64,000 bases of DNA. Origin: Podarcis bocagei (lineage: Eukaryota). Within the stretch, counting starts at the first letter, position 1. Every line of letters begins with the position of its first letter. The stretch is taken from NCBI GenBank assembly GCA_964188305.1, contig OZ076888.1; one strand, given 5' to 3'. Made by a program: the position numbers and the translations under genes. Of the stretch, positions 5,483 through 34,988 are shown piece by piece. The notes beneath the pieces were generated by a model. The model searched no databases. It saw nothing but the letters and a program-made list of their open reading frames with translations, and was not told where the DNA came from.

Positions 5483-7303
5483 ATGGGAGATGGAGTCCGA
5501 TAACGCCTGAAGGGCCACAGGTTCCCCACCCAGCTCTATATAGGGCTTTCCTTGTCCTTGAGATACCACCTCCAAAAGTCCCTTTTCATAAGAAGCATCT
5601 TTACAAAAGCAGCAGCATCCCAACACAGGGCAAACCATCCATCTGACCATTTGCCCTATATCTGTTCCCTTGCAGAGGCACAGCCTTCTACATGGCATAC
5701 TCCCAGTGGGACAGCTTCCTATCAGTTTCTAGGACAGCCTCTGCTGAAGATTTCAAATCTGTAAAAATATTCCTTAATTGGATTAAACCAGGTTACAGTC
5801 ATGGGAATAGGGTGGAACCATGAAAACACACTGCTAGAACCCTAATTTGGGGGGGGGGGTCAGAAGCAGGTTACAGGGCTTAAAGCATGGGATGGAAGAG
5901 CAAGTGCAGCAAACACACATATCTACCTATGTGTGATCAATAGCAAATTCTTTAGCTCAGCAACCACTGGGAGGCAGTGTCCAATTGAACAGAGAATATC
6001 CAAAGAGACGTACAGCAAAGGACACTTGGTTAGATTGGAAACAGGAGCCAGAATCCATGACTTCTCTATAGCTTATCCTACTAGTCAGTGGAATAGGGTA
6101 CCTTACAAACCCCCACTAAGTGCATATGGCAACCTTGTTTTGTGCACACTGGGTGAGGTAGAAGGCATCTCCCAAAATCCATGGTCACATATTTCAACAC
6201 TCCTCTCCTAGTTTGATGAGCAACATTTTTCATGGATGAGTTTCCACCAGGCTCATTTTGAATTCAGGAGTATCCTTGGAGGCGCAGTATATTATTTCAC
6301 TCCCCAAACAAGTGGGAAATTCAGAGGAGCCTTTGCAGGATCATTTTCCTAGGAGGATCGCTGCTTGGAGGAGTGAGCAGCAGAGATTTATGGTGCGGCT
6401 GTGAAAATCTGTTTATTTACAAATGAACAGGCAGGGAACCAGGAGTAGCACAAATATTGCCTGTTAGCACAGACCTTGGAATCCAAAGTCTAGCAAGCTC
6501 CAAGCACACTTCCTGCTTCTTCCTAGTCATCACTTCCAGCATCTAACTTAACACCATCCGTTGAAAAATTGCCCTCCTAAACAACCCTGTCTCTGATCTC
6601 CAAGGAAGTCCTATGGGCTTGACTCTCAAAACTTCAGGATAGCTGACGGGGGTGGGAGACCCTGGAAAAGGGATGCAAAGTCTAAAACAGCAATAGAGCC
6701 TAAGGCAGGCATTTTAAGAACTTTATTGACTTGCTGGTTTTACGGTTAATTTTCACAATTTTATCATTTTATAGTTTCGCAACACACTGGTTAGACGTTA
6801 CAGTGCTAGGCGATAACTTGTTGAAATGAAAATGAACTCTCACTCACCCACACCAGGTAGAATACCCTGAGCGACGGCACCCCAAGATTGATCATCCATA
6901 CCAGATCTGGGATGCTAAGGAACACCTACCAACTTGTTATAATGACATTTCTCTGTGTGCGGCTTCAGGAGGGCGCCAGAGATGTCCTGTTCTATTCCTT
7001 GTTTCATGCCAGTATTAAATTAGTGACCCAACTTACAGACTCTCCTGAGTAAGGATCTCAACATGCTCACCTATAGAGCAGATGGCTGGGTTGTGTGTCC
7101 TATAAAGTTAGGGGCAAGTTTGAAAAGGCTAAAGAAACAGTGTCTTCATGCAAATGTCAGGTCACACTCAGCATTCATACTTTTTGTTTTTTGTAGCATA
7201 TATATATATATATATATATGCTTTCGTAGATTTTCACGGGTACAGGAATGTAGGTTTTGGTGTCTTCGGGTGTCTTCCCGTGTAAGAGTTGGGGTGTCTA
7301 GGC

Positions 7304-7337
7304 GACGTTTCGACGAGGTCTCACTCGTCATCTTCAG
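7304..7337 (-). ncRNA. Minimal type I hammerhead ribozyme core (left PLE arm, element 3' end)
   Basis: Exact reverse complement of 10098-10131. Confidence 0.7.
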
Positions 7338-7574
7338 GCTGGTGCTTTCGGCTTCTTGTTACTAGAACAGAGCAGGATCTCAGTGTTTGAGTTCCTATAA
7401 ATACTGTTGAGGGGGTGTGGTGTATAGCCTCCAACGTTCTGGGCAGAGAGGAAGTTCCTAGGTTAATGTGCCTTTTCTTCTTTTGTTCATTAATTACTTG
7501 AGGGATATCTTGAGTGATTACTTGAGTGATATTCTGAGTACCACTTAGGAGGGTCATTAGGTGTGGATTAGTTG

Positions 7575-9707
7575 CTAAAGCTTTCGTGTCTTGACCTCTT
7601 GACCTTGTAAAGAGTTTTTCTGAGAAGATGGCTGTACTGCACTTAGTTGTGCTCTGGCTTGGCTTCGTGTATAGGGGCGAGCTGTGGTTTTGTGCCCTGT
7701 GCCAGCCAGATCTGTGTAGGGATTGCAGGGGGGTGCAGCATCCGGAGGTGCCACTATGGTTTGGCTACTGGATGGTGTCTGTAATTTATCTGTGGAGAGG
7801 GTCTGGGTTTGGGTCTGGTGTGGTTGATTGGAGATGGCGTTCTGTGTGCCTCTGGTTCTGGTGTCGGTTTTTGTGGGGAGGGCTAATTTCCAGATGTCTG
7901 GCAGGCGGGACGTGTCGTCACGCTTGTTCATGTTGTGAGGGTGTTTCTCTATCTCGATGGCTTCCATGATTATTCTCTTGTGGTGATGTTCCATGTTAAA
8001 GAGCAATTTGGAATCTGCAAAATTAATTTCGTGTCCTGTTTCTTTCATGTGTTGGTAAAGAGAGGAAGTTTTTTCTTCTTTTTTGACGGCATTCTTGTGT
8101 TCTGCGATACGTGCATTTATTCGTCTGTTTGTTTGTCCAATGTACGTGGCTGGGCAGACTTTGCAGGGTATTTCATAGACCCCTTGGTTTTCTAACTGGA
8201 TTTTATCTTTTGGGTTTCTGAGGATATTGGCTATTTTTTGGTTGGTGCAAAAGGCTGTTTTGATATTGTGTTTATGGAGGATTTTGCTAATTTTATCTGT
8301 AGTGCCCTTGATATAAGGAAGGAGGGCCATGCCATTGTTTTCTTCTGTGTCTTGGTTTTTGGGGGGTGTTTCTTTTTGGATTAGCTTCGTAACCCTGTTT
8401 TGCTGGTATCCGTTGGCGATTAACACATTTGAGAGATTCTGTAACTCAGTTGTCAAGTGGTCTTTGTCAGCCAGGCGTTTGGTTCTGGAGATGAGAGTCT
8501 TGGCTACGGAGTTTATTTGTGCAGGGTGGTGGTGTGATTGTGCATGTAAGTAGCGGTTGGTGTGTTTTTTTTTCCGGTAGATAGTGTGTCCTAGGGAGCC
8601 ATCAGGTTTTTTGTAGATTAGGACGTCAAGGAAGGGAAGTTGGTTGTTGGCTTCTATTTCCATAGTGAATTGTATTTTGGGGTGTAGGCTGTTGAGATGT
8701 GTGAGGAAGCTATCTAGTTTTTCTTTCCCGTGTGGCCAAATTACAAAGGTGTCGTCAACATATCTGAGCCAAAGTTTGGGTTTGTGTTCTGACTTGTCTA
8801 AAGCATTGGTTTCAAAGTGTTCCATGTACAGATTTGCGATGACCGGTGAGAGGGGTGATCCCATAGGTGCTCCTTCTATCTGTTTGTATCTTTGTCCATT
8901 GTGGATGAAGTACGTGTTGGTTAGGCAGTGGTTGGTCAGGTCCAGGATGTATTCGGGGGGATTGTATTTGTTTTGAATGGCTGTCAAGGCTTCATTAATG
9001 GGCACTTGTGTGAAGAGAGATACAACATCGAAGCTCACAAGTAGGTCATCGGGATGTAGGTTTTGCTTCTTTATTGTTTCTATGAACTGGAAGGAGTTTG
9101 TAACGTGTGAAGCGATAGATTCTGCATAGGGCTGAAGTTGCTTAGCGAGAAATTTAGCGAGATTTTGTAGAGGTGAGCCTATGGAGCTGACTATTGGTCT
9201 GAGTGGTGTTCCTTCTTTGTGTATCTTGGGGAGACCGTAGAGTTTGGGGCATCTGGATGATTTTTCTCTGGGGATGATTCTTAGCTGGATTTCTTCACTG
9301 ATAGGAGAGGCTTTTATTTTGGATTTGGTGGTTTTTTCCAGATAGGTGGTGGGATCTGTTTTTATAGGTTGGTAGGTAGGGTCTTGGAGTAGATTTGATA
9401 GTTTTGCTTGGTAGTCCGATGTGTTCATCACAACAGTGGCATTACCTTTGTCTGCTGGGAGAATGATTATGTTGTTGTCTTTCCTCAGGTTGGTGAGTGC
9501 TTTCTGTTCTTCTTTGTGTAAATTGCTTCTGGGTGGTTTGCTGGAGCAGAGGATGTTGGTGACTTCAAGTCTGATTTTATTGGCTTCATCTGGGTTGATT
9601 TTGGTTAGGCTAGCTTCGACTCCGCATATGATGTTTTCCGTGGGGATGCGTCTCGGGGCGACTGCAAAGTTGAAACCTTTGGAGAGTACTTTGGTTTCAG
9701 TTGAGGT
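7575..9707 (-). CDS. PLE polyprotein (reverse transcriptase + GIY-YIG endonuclease), open but N-terminally truncated
   Basis: LSKGFNF, ADKGNATVV, KLYGLPKIHK..PLRPIVS, SFDVVSLFT, GAPMGSPLSP, RYVDD, LPFLDV, GVYEIPCKVC...YIGQT..R..EH, EAIEI, N; no stops over ~710 codons. The ORF track's GTG start at 9719 lies in the inverted-arm duplicate. Confidence 0.92.
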   Translation of the reverse strand, partial: TSTETKVLSKGFNFAVAPRRIPTENIICGVEASLTKINPDEANKIRLEVTNILCSSKPPRSNLHKEEQKALTNLRKDNNIIILPADKGNATVVMNTSDYQAKLSNLLQDPTYQPIKTDPTTYLEKTTKSKIKASPISEEIQLRIIPREKSSRCPKLYGLPKIHKEGTPLRPIVSSIGSPLQNLAKFLAKQLQPYAESIASHVTNSFQFIETIKKQNLHPDDLLVSFDVVSLFTQVPINEALTAIQNKYNPPEYILDLTNHCLTNTYFIHNGQRYKQIEGAPMGSPLSPVIANLYMEHFETNALDKSEHKPKLWLRYVDDTFVIWPHGKEKLDSFLTHLNSLHPKIQFTMEIEANNQLPFLDVLIYKKPDGSLGHTIYRKKKHTNRYLHAQSHHHPAQINSVAKTLISRTKRLADKDHLTTELQNLSNVLIANGYQQNRVTKLIQKETPPKNQDTEENNGMALLPYIKGTTDKISKILHKHNIKTAFCTNQKIANILRNPKDKIQLENQGVYEIPCKVCPATYIGQTNRRINARIAEHKNAVKKEEKTSSLYQHMKETGHEINFADSKLLFNMEHHHKRIIMEAIEIEKHPHNMNKRDDTSRLPDIWKLALPTKTDTRTRGTQNAISNQPHQTQTQTLSTDKLQTPSSSQTIVAPPDAAPPCNPYTDLAGTGHKTTARPYTRSQARAQLSAVQPSSQKNSLQGQEVKTRKL

Positions 9708-10097
9708 GCACAAAACCACAGCTCGCCCCTATACACAGGGCACAAAACCACAGCTCGCCCCTATACACGAAGCCAAGCCAGAGCACAACTAAGTGCAGTA
9801 CAGCCATCTTCTCAGAAAAACTCTTTACAAGGTCAAGAGGTCAAGACACGAAAGCTTTAGCAACTAATCCACACCTAATGACCCTCCTAAGTGGTACTCA
9901 GAATATCACTCAAGTAATCACTCAAGATATCCCTCAAGTAATTAATGAACAAAAGAAGAAAAGGCACATTAACCTAGGAACTTCCTCTCTGCCCAGAACG
10001 TTGGAGGCTATACACCACACCCCCTCAACAGTATTTATAGGAACTCAAACACTGAGATCCTGCTCTGTTCTAGTAACAAGAAGCCGAAAGCACCAGC

Positions 10098-10131
10098 CTG
10101 AAGATGACGAGTGAGACCTCGTCGAAACGTC
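10098..10131 (+). ncRNA. Minimal type I hammerhead ribozyme core (right PLE arm)
   Basis: CTGAAGA-T-GACGAG-tgagac-CTCGTC-GAAA-CG-TC; palindromic ACGT helix III; helix I only ~2 bp (GC/GC). Confidence 0.7.
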
Positions 10132-10182
10132 GCCTAGACACCCCAACTCTTACACGGGAAGACACCCGAAGACACCAAAACC

Positions 10183-10185
<3 letters not shown>

Positions 10186-10265
<80 letters not shown>
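10186..10265. repeat. (AT)n microsatellite at the right PLE flank; shorter (AT)n at 7198-7219 on the left flank
   Basis: Direct reading. Confidence 0.95.
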
Positions 10266-22684: not shown

Positions 22685-22749
22685 TCACTTGACGAGCGCT
22701 TGGTTGCACTGCCCGCAGACAAAGACGGTCTCCCGCTGGGCATCAGGGG
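22685..22749 (-). CDS. ZFYVE27: Protrudin last coding exon (stop); joined CDS 1248 nt = 415 aa with the microexon
   Basis: ctgcag|CC CCT GAT...AAG TGA; APDAQRETVFVCGQCNQALVK*. Confidence 0.94.
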
Positions 22750-22963
22750 CTGCAGTAGAAAGCACTGGTCAGAGACTCGGCCAAGGACTGTGCAGCTTTC
22801 CACCCACAGAACCCAACAAGTATTTTATTAGCCCTCAGGCACACACCCCAAGAGAGAGAAAGCCTCTGTCCTCTGCTACCTCCCCACTGTAGCATTAATT
22901 AGAAACAGTAAGAATTACACCCAGCCATTCCCCCGGAAGGGAAACAGCAAGTGCACAAAGAAA

Positions 22964-23230
22964 AAAATTCCTTCCAGTAGCACCTTAAAGACCAACTAAG
23001 TTAGTTCTTGGTATGAGCTTTCGTGTGCATGCACACTTCTTCAGATACACTGAAACAGAAGTTGCCAGATCCTTCTATATAGTGAGAAGGTGGGGAGGGG
23101 TGTTACTCAGAAGGGTGGTGGGAATGGGAGATAGGCAGATAGCTGAGATGAGCCTGTTGACGATTCTTAACGACTCTCGTTAAGACTCTCGTTAAGACTC
23201 TCGTGCTACTGGAAGGAATCTTTTTTATTT
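22964..23230 (-). mobile_element. Short PLE-derived insertion (3'-end fragment with an inverted terminus) in the last ZFYVE27 intron
   Basis: 17-bp inverted repeat ATTCCTTCCAGTAGCAC (22967-22983 / 23203-23219); 12-bp direct repeat TGCACAAAGAAA (22952-22963 / 23231-23242); internal hammerhead. Confidence 0.8.
23011..23048 (-). ncRNA. Minimal type I hammerhead ribozyme
   Basis: Minus strand GTAT-CTGAAGA-A-GTGTG-catg-CACAC-GAAA-GC-TC-ATAC: 4-bp helix I, 5-bp helix II, palindromic AGCT helix III, predicted cleavage after C at 23015. Confidence 0.85.
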
Positions 23231-23306
23231 TGCACAAAGAAAGAGGAGCTAACTCCCAAGCTGCCTGCCAGAAAGGCCATCTCTCGCTCTCCCACTCCTC
23301 ACTCAC

Positions 23307-23388
23307 CTGTAGCCCCCATGTAGCTCTTGGGAACTTTGAAGGAACAGCACCTGGAGCAGAAACTGTTCCCACAGTTGCTGCAGCTCCG
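23307..23388 (-). CDS. ZFYVE27: Protrudin coding exon 11 (82 nt, FYVE)
   Basis: RSCSNCGNSFCSRCCSFKVPKSYMGAT; tccag| and G|gtgagt. Confidence 0.94.
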
Positions 23389-34857: not shown

Positions 34858-34988
34858 CCCACACTGACTGGCAGTGGCTTTCTAGGATTTGAGTCAGGGA
34901 GCTTTTCCCAGCCCCACCTTGAGATGCCAGGGATTGAACCTGGGACTTTTTGCATGCAAAGCAGATGCTCTATCGCTGAGCTACGGCC
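34858..34988 (-). mobile_element. tRNA-derived SINE, 5' part, next to the ZFYVE27 promoter
   Basis: Minus strand GGCCGTAGCTCAGCGATAGAGC...CCCAGGTTCAATCCCTGGCATCTC...ctgccagtcagtgt. Confidence 0.75.

Follow-up and report, generated by a model that had tools for sequence, protein, structure and literature searches.

A minimal hammerhead motif in the last coding intron of a lacertid FYVE gene, most likely a silent passenger of a young Penelope-like insertion

The last coding intron of a FYVE-domain gene in Podarcis bocagei contains, in the sense orientation of the gene, a motif with all catalytic positions of a minimal hammerhead ribozyme. The initial annotation of this DNA proposed that the motif constitutes a concentration-dependent switch, which would cut the pre-mRNA after dimerization with other transcripts of the same repeat family and remove the terminal exon. 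The locus raises the question of whether the host gene is regulated by a ribozyme or whether the motif was brought in by a mobile element and remains without consequence at this site. We addressed this question in the whole stretch of DNA analyzed, a window of 64 kb, together with DNA and RNA sequencing reads.

The hammerhead motif and its host intron

On the minus strand, positions 23048..23011 read GUAU / CUGAAGA / A / GUGUG-CAUG-CACAC / GAA / AGCU / C / AUAC, and a core pattern combined with a helix descriptor identified this segment (23011..23048) as a minimal type I hammerhead motif. Helix I comprises 4 bp (GUAU/AUAC, 23048-23045 with 23014-23011) and is followed by the core segment C3-A9 (CUGAAGA, 23044-23038), an extra A between A9 and G10.1 (23037), a 5-bp helix II (GUGUG/CACAC, 23036-23032 with 23027-23023) with the loop CAUG (23031-23028), the GAA of G12-A14 (23022-23020), the palindrome AGCU in the helix III position (23019-23016), and C17 (23015); the predicted cut falls between 23015 and 23014. 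Every invariant hammerhead position was found, namely, C3-A9 (C3 U4 G5 A6 N7 G8 A9), G12, A13, and A14, A15.1 and U16.1, and C as H17, and the G10.1-C11.1 pair is formed by G23036 and C23023. The complete catalytic core on the minus strand, the 4-bp helix I, the 5-bp helix II, and the AGCU replacing helix III, all of which had been described in the initial annotation, are thus present as read in the sequence. Folding indicated that helices I and II can form and that helix III amounts to one A-U pair over a 2-nt GC loop. The monomer consequently lacks the three helices of a hammerhead, and a helix III is possible only as AGCU:AGCU pairing between two copies.

The loose core pattern matched once in the 64-kb window, compared with 0.08 matches expected. 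A purpose-built descriptor comprising helices I and II and the palindrome, which recovers the site at 23011..23048, yielded a mean of 0.003 matches per shuffled window in 1000 dinucleotide-preserving shuffles of the window, with at least one match in 2 of the 1000. A search with the hammerhead models of Rfam 15 gave no match at 23011..23048, either at the gathering threshold or at E values up to 10. The Rfam hammerhead models require a helix III; we ascribe the miss to this limitation of the models and do not count it as evidence against the motif.

The architecture of the motif corresponds to that of the minimal hammerheads carried by the flanking repeats of Penelope-like elements (PLEs), as described by Cervera and de la Pena 2014 (PMC4209133) and, according to its citation in PMC6765202, by Lunse, Weinberg and Breaker 2017. 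The published hallmarks of these motifs are a helix I of 4-5 bp, a helix II of 6-8 bp, a palindrome at 15.x-16.x, and, as conserved features, an unpaired nucleotide separating 9 from 10.1 and the G10.1-C11.1 pair, and the motifs occur in thousands of copies, mostly lone or oppositely oriented (PMC4209133). In line with the PLE-type minimal type I architecture claimed earlier, the intronic motif shares with them the type I topology, the full core, the unpaired nucleotide between A9 and G10.1, the G10.1-C11.1 pair, the loopless 4-bp helix I, and a 4-nt palindrome as helix III. In contrast, its helix II has 5 bp, one fewer than the 6-8 bp found in most PLE hammerheads. A single minimal hammerhead of this type showed no detectable cleavage and dimers showed low activity (PMC4209133), which agrees with the earlier statement that these motifs cleave poorly alone.

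The motif lies in the last coding intron of a minus-strand gene (22750..23306, GT..AG), which measures 557 nt in its filled form and 278 nt in its empty form. The penultimate coding exon (23388..23307 on the minus strand) translates to RSCSNCGNSFCSRCCSFKVPKSYMGAT and encodes the FYVE zinc-finger core, while the start of the terminal exon (22685..22749) holds the last 20 whole codons, translating to PDAQRETVFVCGQCNQALVK, and the stop codon at 22687-22685. The exon pieces were searched singly and unspliced, and the Pfam FYVE model matched the upstream piece with an E value of 0.0028, below the curated cut-off, as is expected for a piece of just 27 residues. Upstream minus-strand open reading frames (ORFs) resemble protrudin exons; on the strength of these and of human protrudin, we take the gene to be ZFYVE27, and as far as seen, the 64-kb window appears to contain the whole of it. 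In stranded RNA sequencing of a related organism, 6 and 12 reads connect 22749 directly with 23307. The joint shows CT..AC on the plus strand, and all of the reads are oriented as the minus-strand gene, which confirms both splice sites of the intron. The coordinates and the RNA joint agree in placing the motif sense to the gene, inside the last intron and within the FYVE-coding part, and the dimensions claimed earlier (an intron of 557 nt with the motif approximately 265 nt upstream of the acceptor) were measured as 557 nt and, from the predicted cut site, 264 nt.

Two further features of the gene region were recorded. In the coding part of the terminal exon, position 22697 shows a C/T difference in about half of the reads of either RNA run, and one DNA contig of the related organism shows it as well; this heterozygous or species-level single-nucleotide polymorphism would be usable for tests of allele-specific expression. 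Near the 5′ end of the gene, the minus strand at 34926-34984 gave the sole Rfam match of the window at the gathering level, a tRNA-like match that covers part of the model (positions 7-64, 38.8 bits) and possibly marks the head of a SINE derived from a tRNA.

A young insertion from a very abundant repeat family

Contigs from two DNA runs join 22951 to 23231 and 22952 to 23232, skipping 279 nt, and 12 letters at the joint fit both sides, corresponding to a single copy of the target. These empty-site joints define an insertion of 267 nt (22964..23230), also marked by a rise in summed word depth, plus a 12-bp target-site duplication, the copies of which (TGCACAAAGAAA on the plus strand at 22952..22963 and its direct repeat at 23231..23242) are 100% identical. 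The insertion appears as a 5′-truncated Penelope-type element end, oriented on the minus strand and hence sense to the gene. One DNA run (X1) yielded an empty-site contig that departs from the window sequence at 5 substituted positions and in a 6-nt deletion, all of them within 22862-22951. A second contig of this run (22862-22984, 123 nt) matches the window at every position and crosses into the insertion, extending just 21 nt beyond the duplication, which is short of the 31 letters that serve as a rule of thumb. As the two contigs have differing flanks, the sample appears to hold both a filled and an empty haplotype. In the other DNA run (X12), which comes from a second organism, the empty-site contig accounts for all of the local depth (12.3). 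With empty-site contigs in both runs and both organisms, the insertion is not conserved at this intronic site; it is young, polymorphic, and not fixed.

At its 5′ end, the insertion carries an inverted copy of the element's 3′-terminal ~28 nt (23203..23230, plus strand). The inverted ends span 33 nt (22951-22983 and 23203-23235) and are 88% complementary, 23203-23230 pairs with 22964-22983 in the predicted RNA fold, and an AATAAA in gene sense (23229-23224) lies inside the inverted end. Three 12-nt tandem units (23165..23204) act as filler that separates the inverted end from the family-homologous sequence, which spans ~23175 to 22964, the family depth collapsing in 23170-23193. A pyrimidine tract ending in AG (23051..23062, minus strand) lies directly 5′ of helix I. 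The 267 nt contain no ORF and hence no reverse transcriptase or GIY-YIG coding. A PLE origin is nevertheless suggested by the type of motif and by the insertion signatures found, which comprise the duplication, AT-rich flanks, alternative 3′ ends, an optional tail, and inverted and tandem repeats.

The summed word depth was 28-30 in the unique flanks versus 1-3.9 million over 22954-23145, with the family depth peaking over the hammerhead and the 3′ end; this measure is not a copy number but shows that the family is very abundant. Within the hammerhead, variants reaching at least 5% of the family were found at 23015 (C17>U, an allowed H), 23022, and 23023 and nowhere else, and family reads contained no indel at the extra A (23037). 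Positions 23022 and 23023 are the two sides of a CpG at C11.1/G12, are changed in 11-18% of the family depth, and look like ordinary CpG decay, including an inactivating change of G12 that accounts for 12-18% of the depth. The copy in the ZFYVE27 intron has the family-majority letters throughout the hammerhead, with the CpG intact. Family copies have 3′ ends at 22957, 22961, and 22973, with AT-rich, poorly agreeing flanks; some copies have a longer optional extension, which is semi-conserved in many RNA reads, and both inverted (opposite-strand) and tandem head-to-tail junctions were found among family reads. The very high copy number and the many lone or inverted copies are again features in common with the known PLE hammerheads, from which the ZFYVE27-intron copy differs in having no adjacent ORF; no described family was matched to the lacertid one.

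Two observations concern the 5′ edge of the hammerhead in the family. About two thirds of the family depth ends at 23048-23050, which is the 5′ edge of helix I, after a ...UUUCAG tract. In addition, both DNA and RNA of the family contain go-back joints from 23048 to 22957-22986, corresponding to head-to-tail units of 63-94 nt.

The window also contains a separate, apparently intact PLE (7248-10187) that belongs to a different family from the intron copy. Its minus-strand ORF (7578-9719) encodes 714 residues with a reverse transcriptase match (RVT_1, 7e-16) and a weak GIY-YIG match, and the element lies between perfect 454-nt inverted arms flanked by (TA)n. Each of its two minimal hammerheads (10096-10133 on the plus strand and 7339-7302 on the minus strand) has an extra U and an ACGU palindrome, and they share the architecture of the intron motif but not its sequence. 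The hammerhead lies ~54 nt from the element end, compared with 51 nt between the cut site and the 3′ end in the intron copy. We considered these hammerheads as partners of the intron motif and rejected them, as ACGU is not complementary to AGCU and the sequences are otherwise unrelated.

A lizard element of this type, the Poseidon PLE of Anolis carolinensis (PAc), was studied by Frangieh et al. 2024 (PMC11167929). In the anole element, both DNA strands are primed and AT-rich targets are used, two internal starts of reverse transcription explain an optional 'tail', the ORF begins within the hammerhead, and the hammerhead cleaves only with the element's protein; among the RNA-seq reads, none stopped at the cut site (PMC11167929). 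PAc and the insertion described here, both lizard elements of the PLE type, have in common an ATG in the helix II/loop region (CAUG here), a hammerhead shortly upstream of the 3′ end of the insertion, alternative 3′ ends ('tail'), AT-rich targets, and, at the threshold applied here, the lack of RNA-seq ends at the cut site, and priming on two strands would explain the inverted ends observed here. They differ in the distance from the cut site to the 3′ end (~51 nt here versus ~85-92 nt in PAc) and in the frame starting from the ATG of the CAUG loop, which, unlike that of PAc, closes after 9 codons in the ZFYVE27-intron copy.

Folding, partners, and transcripts of the family

No second copy of the family, and thus no cis partner for the hammerhead, was found within the 64-kb window. 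The hammerhead monomer folds with -6.8 kcal/mol, which gives -13.6 kcal/mol for two free monomers, compared with -11.1 kcal/mol for a trans double hammerhead held together by AGCU:AGCU pairing and swapped helices I. The best dimer is an extended duplex formed through the 14-nt palindrome of helix II (-30.6 kcal/mol), which has no three-way junction. By these nearest-neighbor energies, which leave out tertiary contacts and protein help, the predicted stability of the trans dimer falls below that of two monomers and far below that of the inactive duplex. Folding also revealed that the catalytic core is complementary to the pyrimidine tract at 23051..23062, with which it can form a competing hairpin. 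In the 311-nt insertion RNA, the terminal stem of the inverted ends is part of the minimum free energy structure (-94 kcal/mol, z of -5.0).

Both RNA runs originate from the second organism, in the DNA of which the empty site alone was seen, and the RNA results that follow apply to the family as a whole and not to this locus. Family transcripts are abundant on both strands (depth 300-470). With depths of 300-420 per strand and a threshold of a fifth of the local depth, below which cleavage of up to ~20% of family transcripts would be invisible, neither run showed molecule ends accumulating at 23014/23015 in the family RNA. The ratio of hammerhead-sense to antisense RNA depth in the bin 22978-23001 was ~0.97 and 0.70 in the two runs, indicating no strong loss of sense transcripts, in a comparison confounded by the element's own transcription.

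The family transcripts further exhibit strand-specific A>G differences (T>C for minus-strand RNA) that are confined to RNA, occur at at least 10 sites in up to 20-40% of reads, and have DNA support below 0.4%. The sites include 22985-22999, 23003, 23005, 23012, and 23013, of which 23012 falls in helix I of the hammerhead. The pattern looks like the ADAR A-to-I hyper-editing signature, probably because inverted copies of the family form long duplexes. As a separate observation, there are two positions at which RNA reads depart from the window sequence and agree well in how they continue, namely, 23110 (70-100 reads, agreement 0.85-0.94) and 23175 (agreement 0.91). These reads point to strong expression of one or a few family members or subfamilies that differ from this copy in their upstream part.

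Passenger, switch, or transposon effect

Taken together, our data make it very probable that the hammerhead is a passenger of a young PLE-type insertion and is most likely catalytically silent at the ZFYVE27 locus. In the course of events that we propose, a lacertid Penelope-like retroelement would recently have placed a 5′-truncated, 267-nt copy of its end, in sense orientation, into the last coding intron, and this end would have brought along the minimal hammerhead of the family ~50 nt before its 3′ terminus. In the life cycle of the element, the hammerhead would belong to tandem, multi-copy transcripts, in which, judging from the literature, two motifs may build a joint helix III from their AGCU palindromes, probably assisted by the element's protein. 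At ZFYVE27, the copy would stand alone without a helix III, its core could pair with the upstream pyrimidine tract, the inverted ends would close the insertion, and the intron would be removed as usual. The combination of a lone copy, a competing pairing of the core, and paired inverted ends makes this hammerhead most likely catalytically silent, and we infer that it has no effect on ZFYVE27.

That the insertion affects ZFYVE27 in carriers in the ordinary, noncatalytic ways of a transposon appears to us rather unlikely. Such an effect could arise from a cryptic acceptor at the AG-ended tract (23062-23051), from the AATAAA at 23229-23224, or from a slowing of splicing by the 33-bp stem or by A-to-I editing. 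The AG-ended tract and the AATAAA are indeed present in the sense strand of the gene, the terminal stem is strong, family transcripts carry the RNA-only A>G changes described above, and retrozyme-type repeats were reported to be depleted in Xenopus introns (bioRxiv 10.64898/2026.07.22.740005). On the other hand, the splice-site strength of the AG at 23051 was judged by eye, and the branch-point region and the true acceptor, more than 200 nt away, are untouched.

The regulatory switch put forward in the initial annotation, in which the sense hammerhead would cleave the ZFYVE27 pre-mRNA before splicing after trans-dimerization, with loss of the terminal exon and the poly(A) site, fares worse, and we regard it as very unlikely. 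The hammerhead core of this copy retains all of its nucleotides, even the C11.1/G12 CpG lost to decay in part of the family, potential partner transcripts are abundant on both strands, the PLE protein can aid cleavage in the anole element (PMC11167929), and an intronic ribozyme is known to tune a mammalian host gene, Cpeb3 (PMC10919898). However, the insertion is polymorphic and absent from the related organism, with no selection visible, and an insertion that is not fixed cannot be an evolved regulator. Nor did the window offer a second family copy as a cis partner, and folding predicts an unstable trans dimer, with the competing inactive duplex 19 kcal/mol better. The family RNA, from the organism without the insertion and at the threshold of a fifth of the depth, revealed no excess of ends at the cut site. 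Furthermore, as far as the summary of Dye 2006 and Fong 2009 in PMC2995048 goes, an intron cut by a slow hammerhead was still spliced efficiently in vivo, and splicing was aborted only by the fast hepatitis delta virus (HDV) ribozyme.

The comparison with conserved intronic ribozymes leads in the same direction. For the mammalian Cpeb3 HDV-like ribozyme, a half-life of 2-3 min and a distance of 9931 nt to the following exon are reported, and RNA polymerase II elongates at 3.5-4.1 knt/min (PMC10919898), a rate that leaves ~4 s for the 264 nt from the cut site to the acceptor in ZFYVE27. Given the lack of detectable monomer activity, we infer that the motif cannot compete on this time scale. Conserved intronic hammerheads of amniotes, HH9 and HH10, are also cited in PMC10919898, and together with the CPEB3 ribozyme they share with the present motif the sense orientation within an intron of a protein-coding gene. 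In contrast to the presence/absence polymorphism observed here, however, they are conserved across orders; they have stable monomer folds, whereas helix III is impossible for the lone ZFYVE27 copy, and kilobases, not 264 nt, separate them from the next exon. The proposition that in carriers the lone hammerhead, aided by Penelope protein or by family transcripts, cuts a measurable share of the ZFYVE27 pre-mRNA has very little probability in our view; if true, the polymorphism would be a natural experiment on the effect of an intronic ribozyme on its host gene.

It is extremely unlikely that the copy is one unit of a non-autonomous element that resembles retrozymes, forms circles, and could be mobilized from the ZFYVE27 locus. 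Animal non-LTR retrozymes (Cervera and de la Pena 2020, PMC7229834; bioRxiv 10.64898/2026.07.22.740005) resemble the motif in their type I topology, short palindromic helix III, and link to PLE pLTRs, they have been proposed to be PLE derivatives, and they share with the family short tandem units, as documented by the head-to-tail junctions of 63-94 nt in family DNA and RNA (23048 back to 22957-22986). The tandem units of the family nevertheless lie elsewhere in the genome. Retrozymes form tandem arrays that give rise to circular RNAs of 170-400 nt, whereas the locus holds a single unit, the one family copy in 64 kb, so that there is no second ribozyme to release a monomer, and no circular junction was seen for the ZFYVE27 locus. 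Finally, an accidental fit of 38 nt to the hammerhead consensus, with which the lack of any score from the Rfam hammerhead models and a local fold no stabler than shuffles (z of 0.02) would accord, is effectively ruled out by the 0.003 matches expected per window and by the fact that a very abundant family has retained the motif, altered at the CpG and at H17 alone, and is further opposed by the nonconsensus hallmarks shared with PLE hammerheads (PMC4209133).

As one copy in a very abundant family, of a motif described since 2014, the hammerhead in ZFYVE27 adds little that is new by itself. Its significance lies in the setting of a passenger that is most likely silent: an insertion that lies in sense in the short terminal intron of a conserved gene and is polymorphic, one haplotype carrying it and another lacking it. 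Since filled and empty haplotypes exist, heterozygotes would allow a clean, allele-specific test of whether a lone PLE hammerhead cleaves in vivo.
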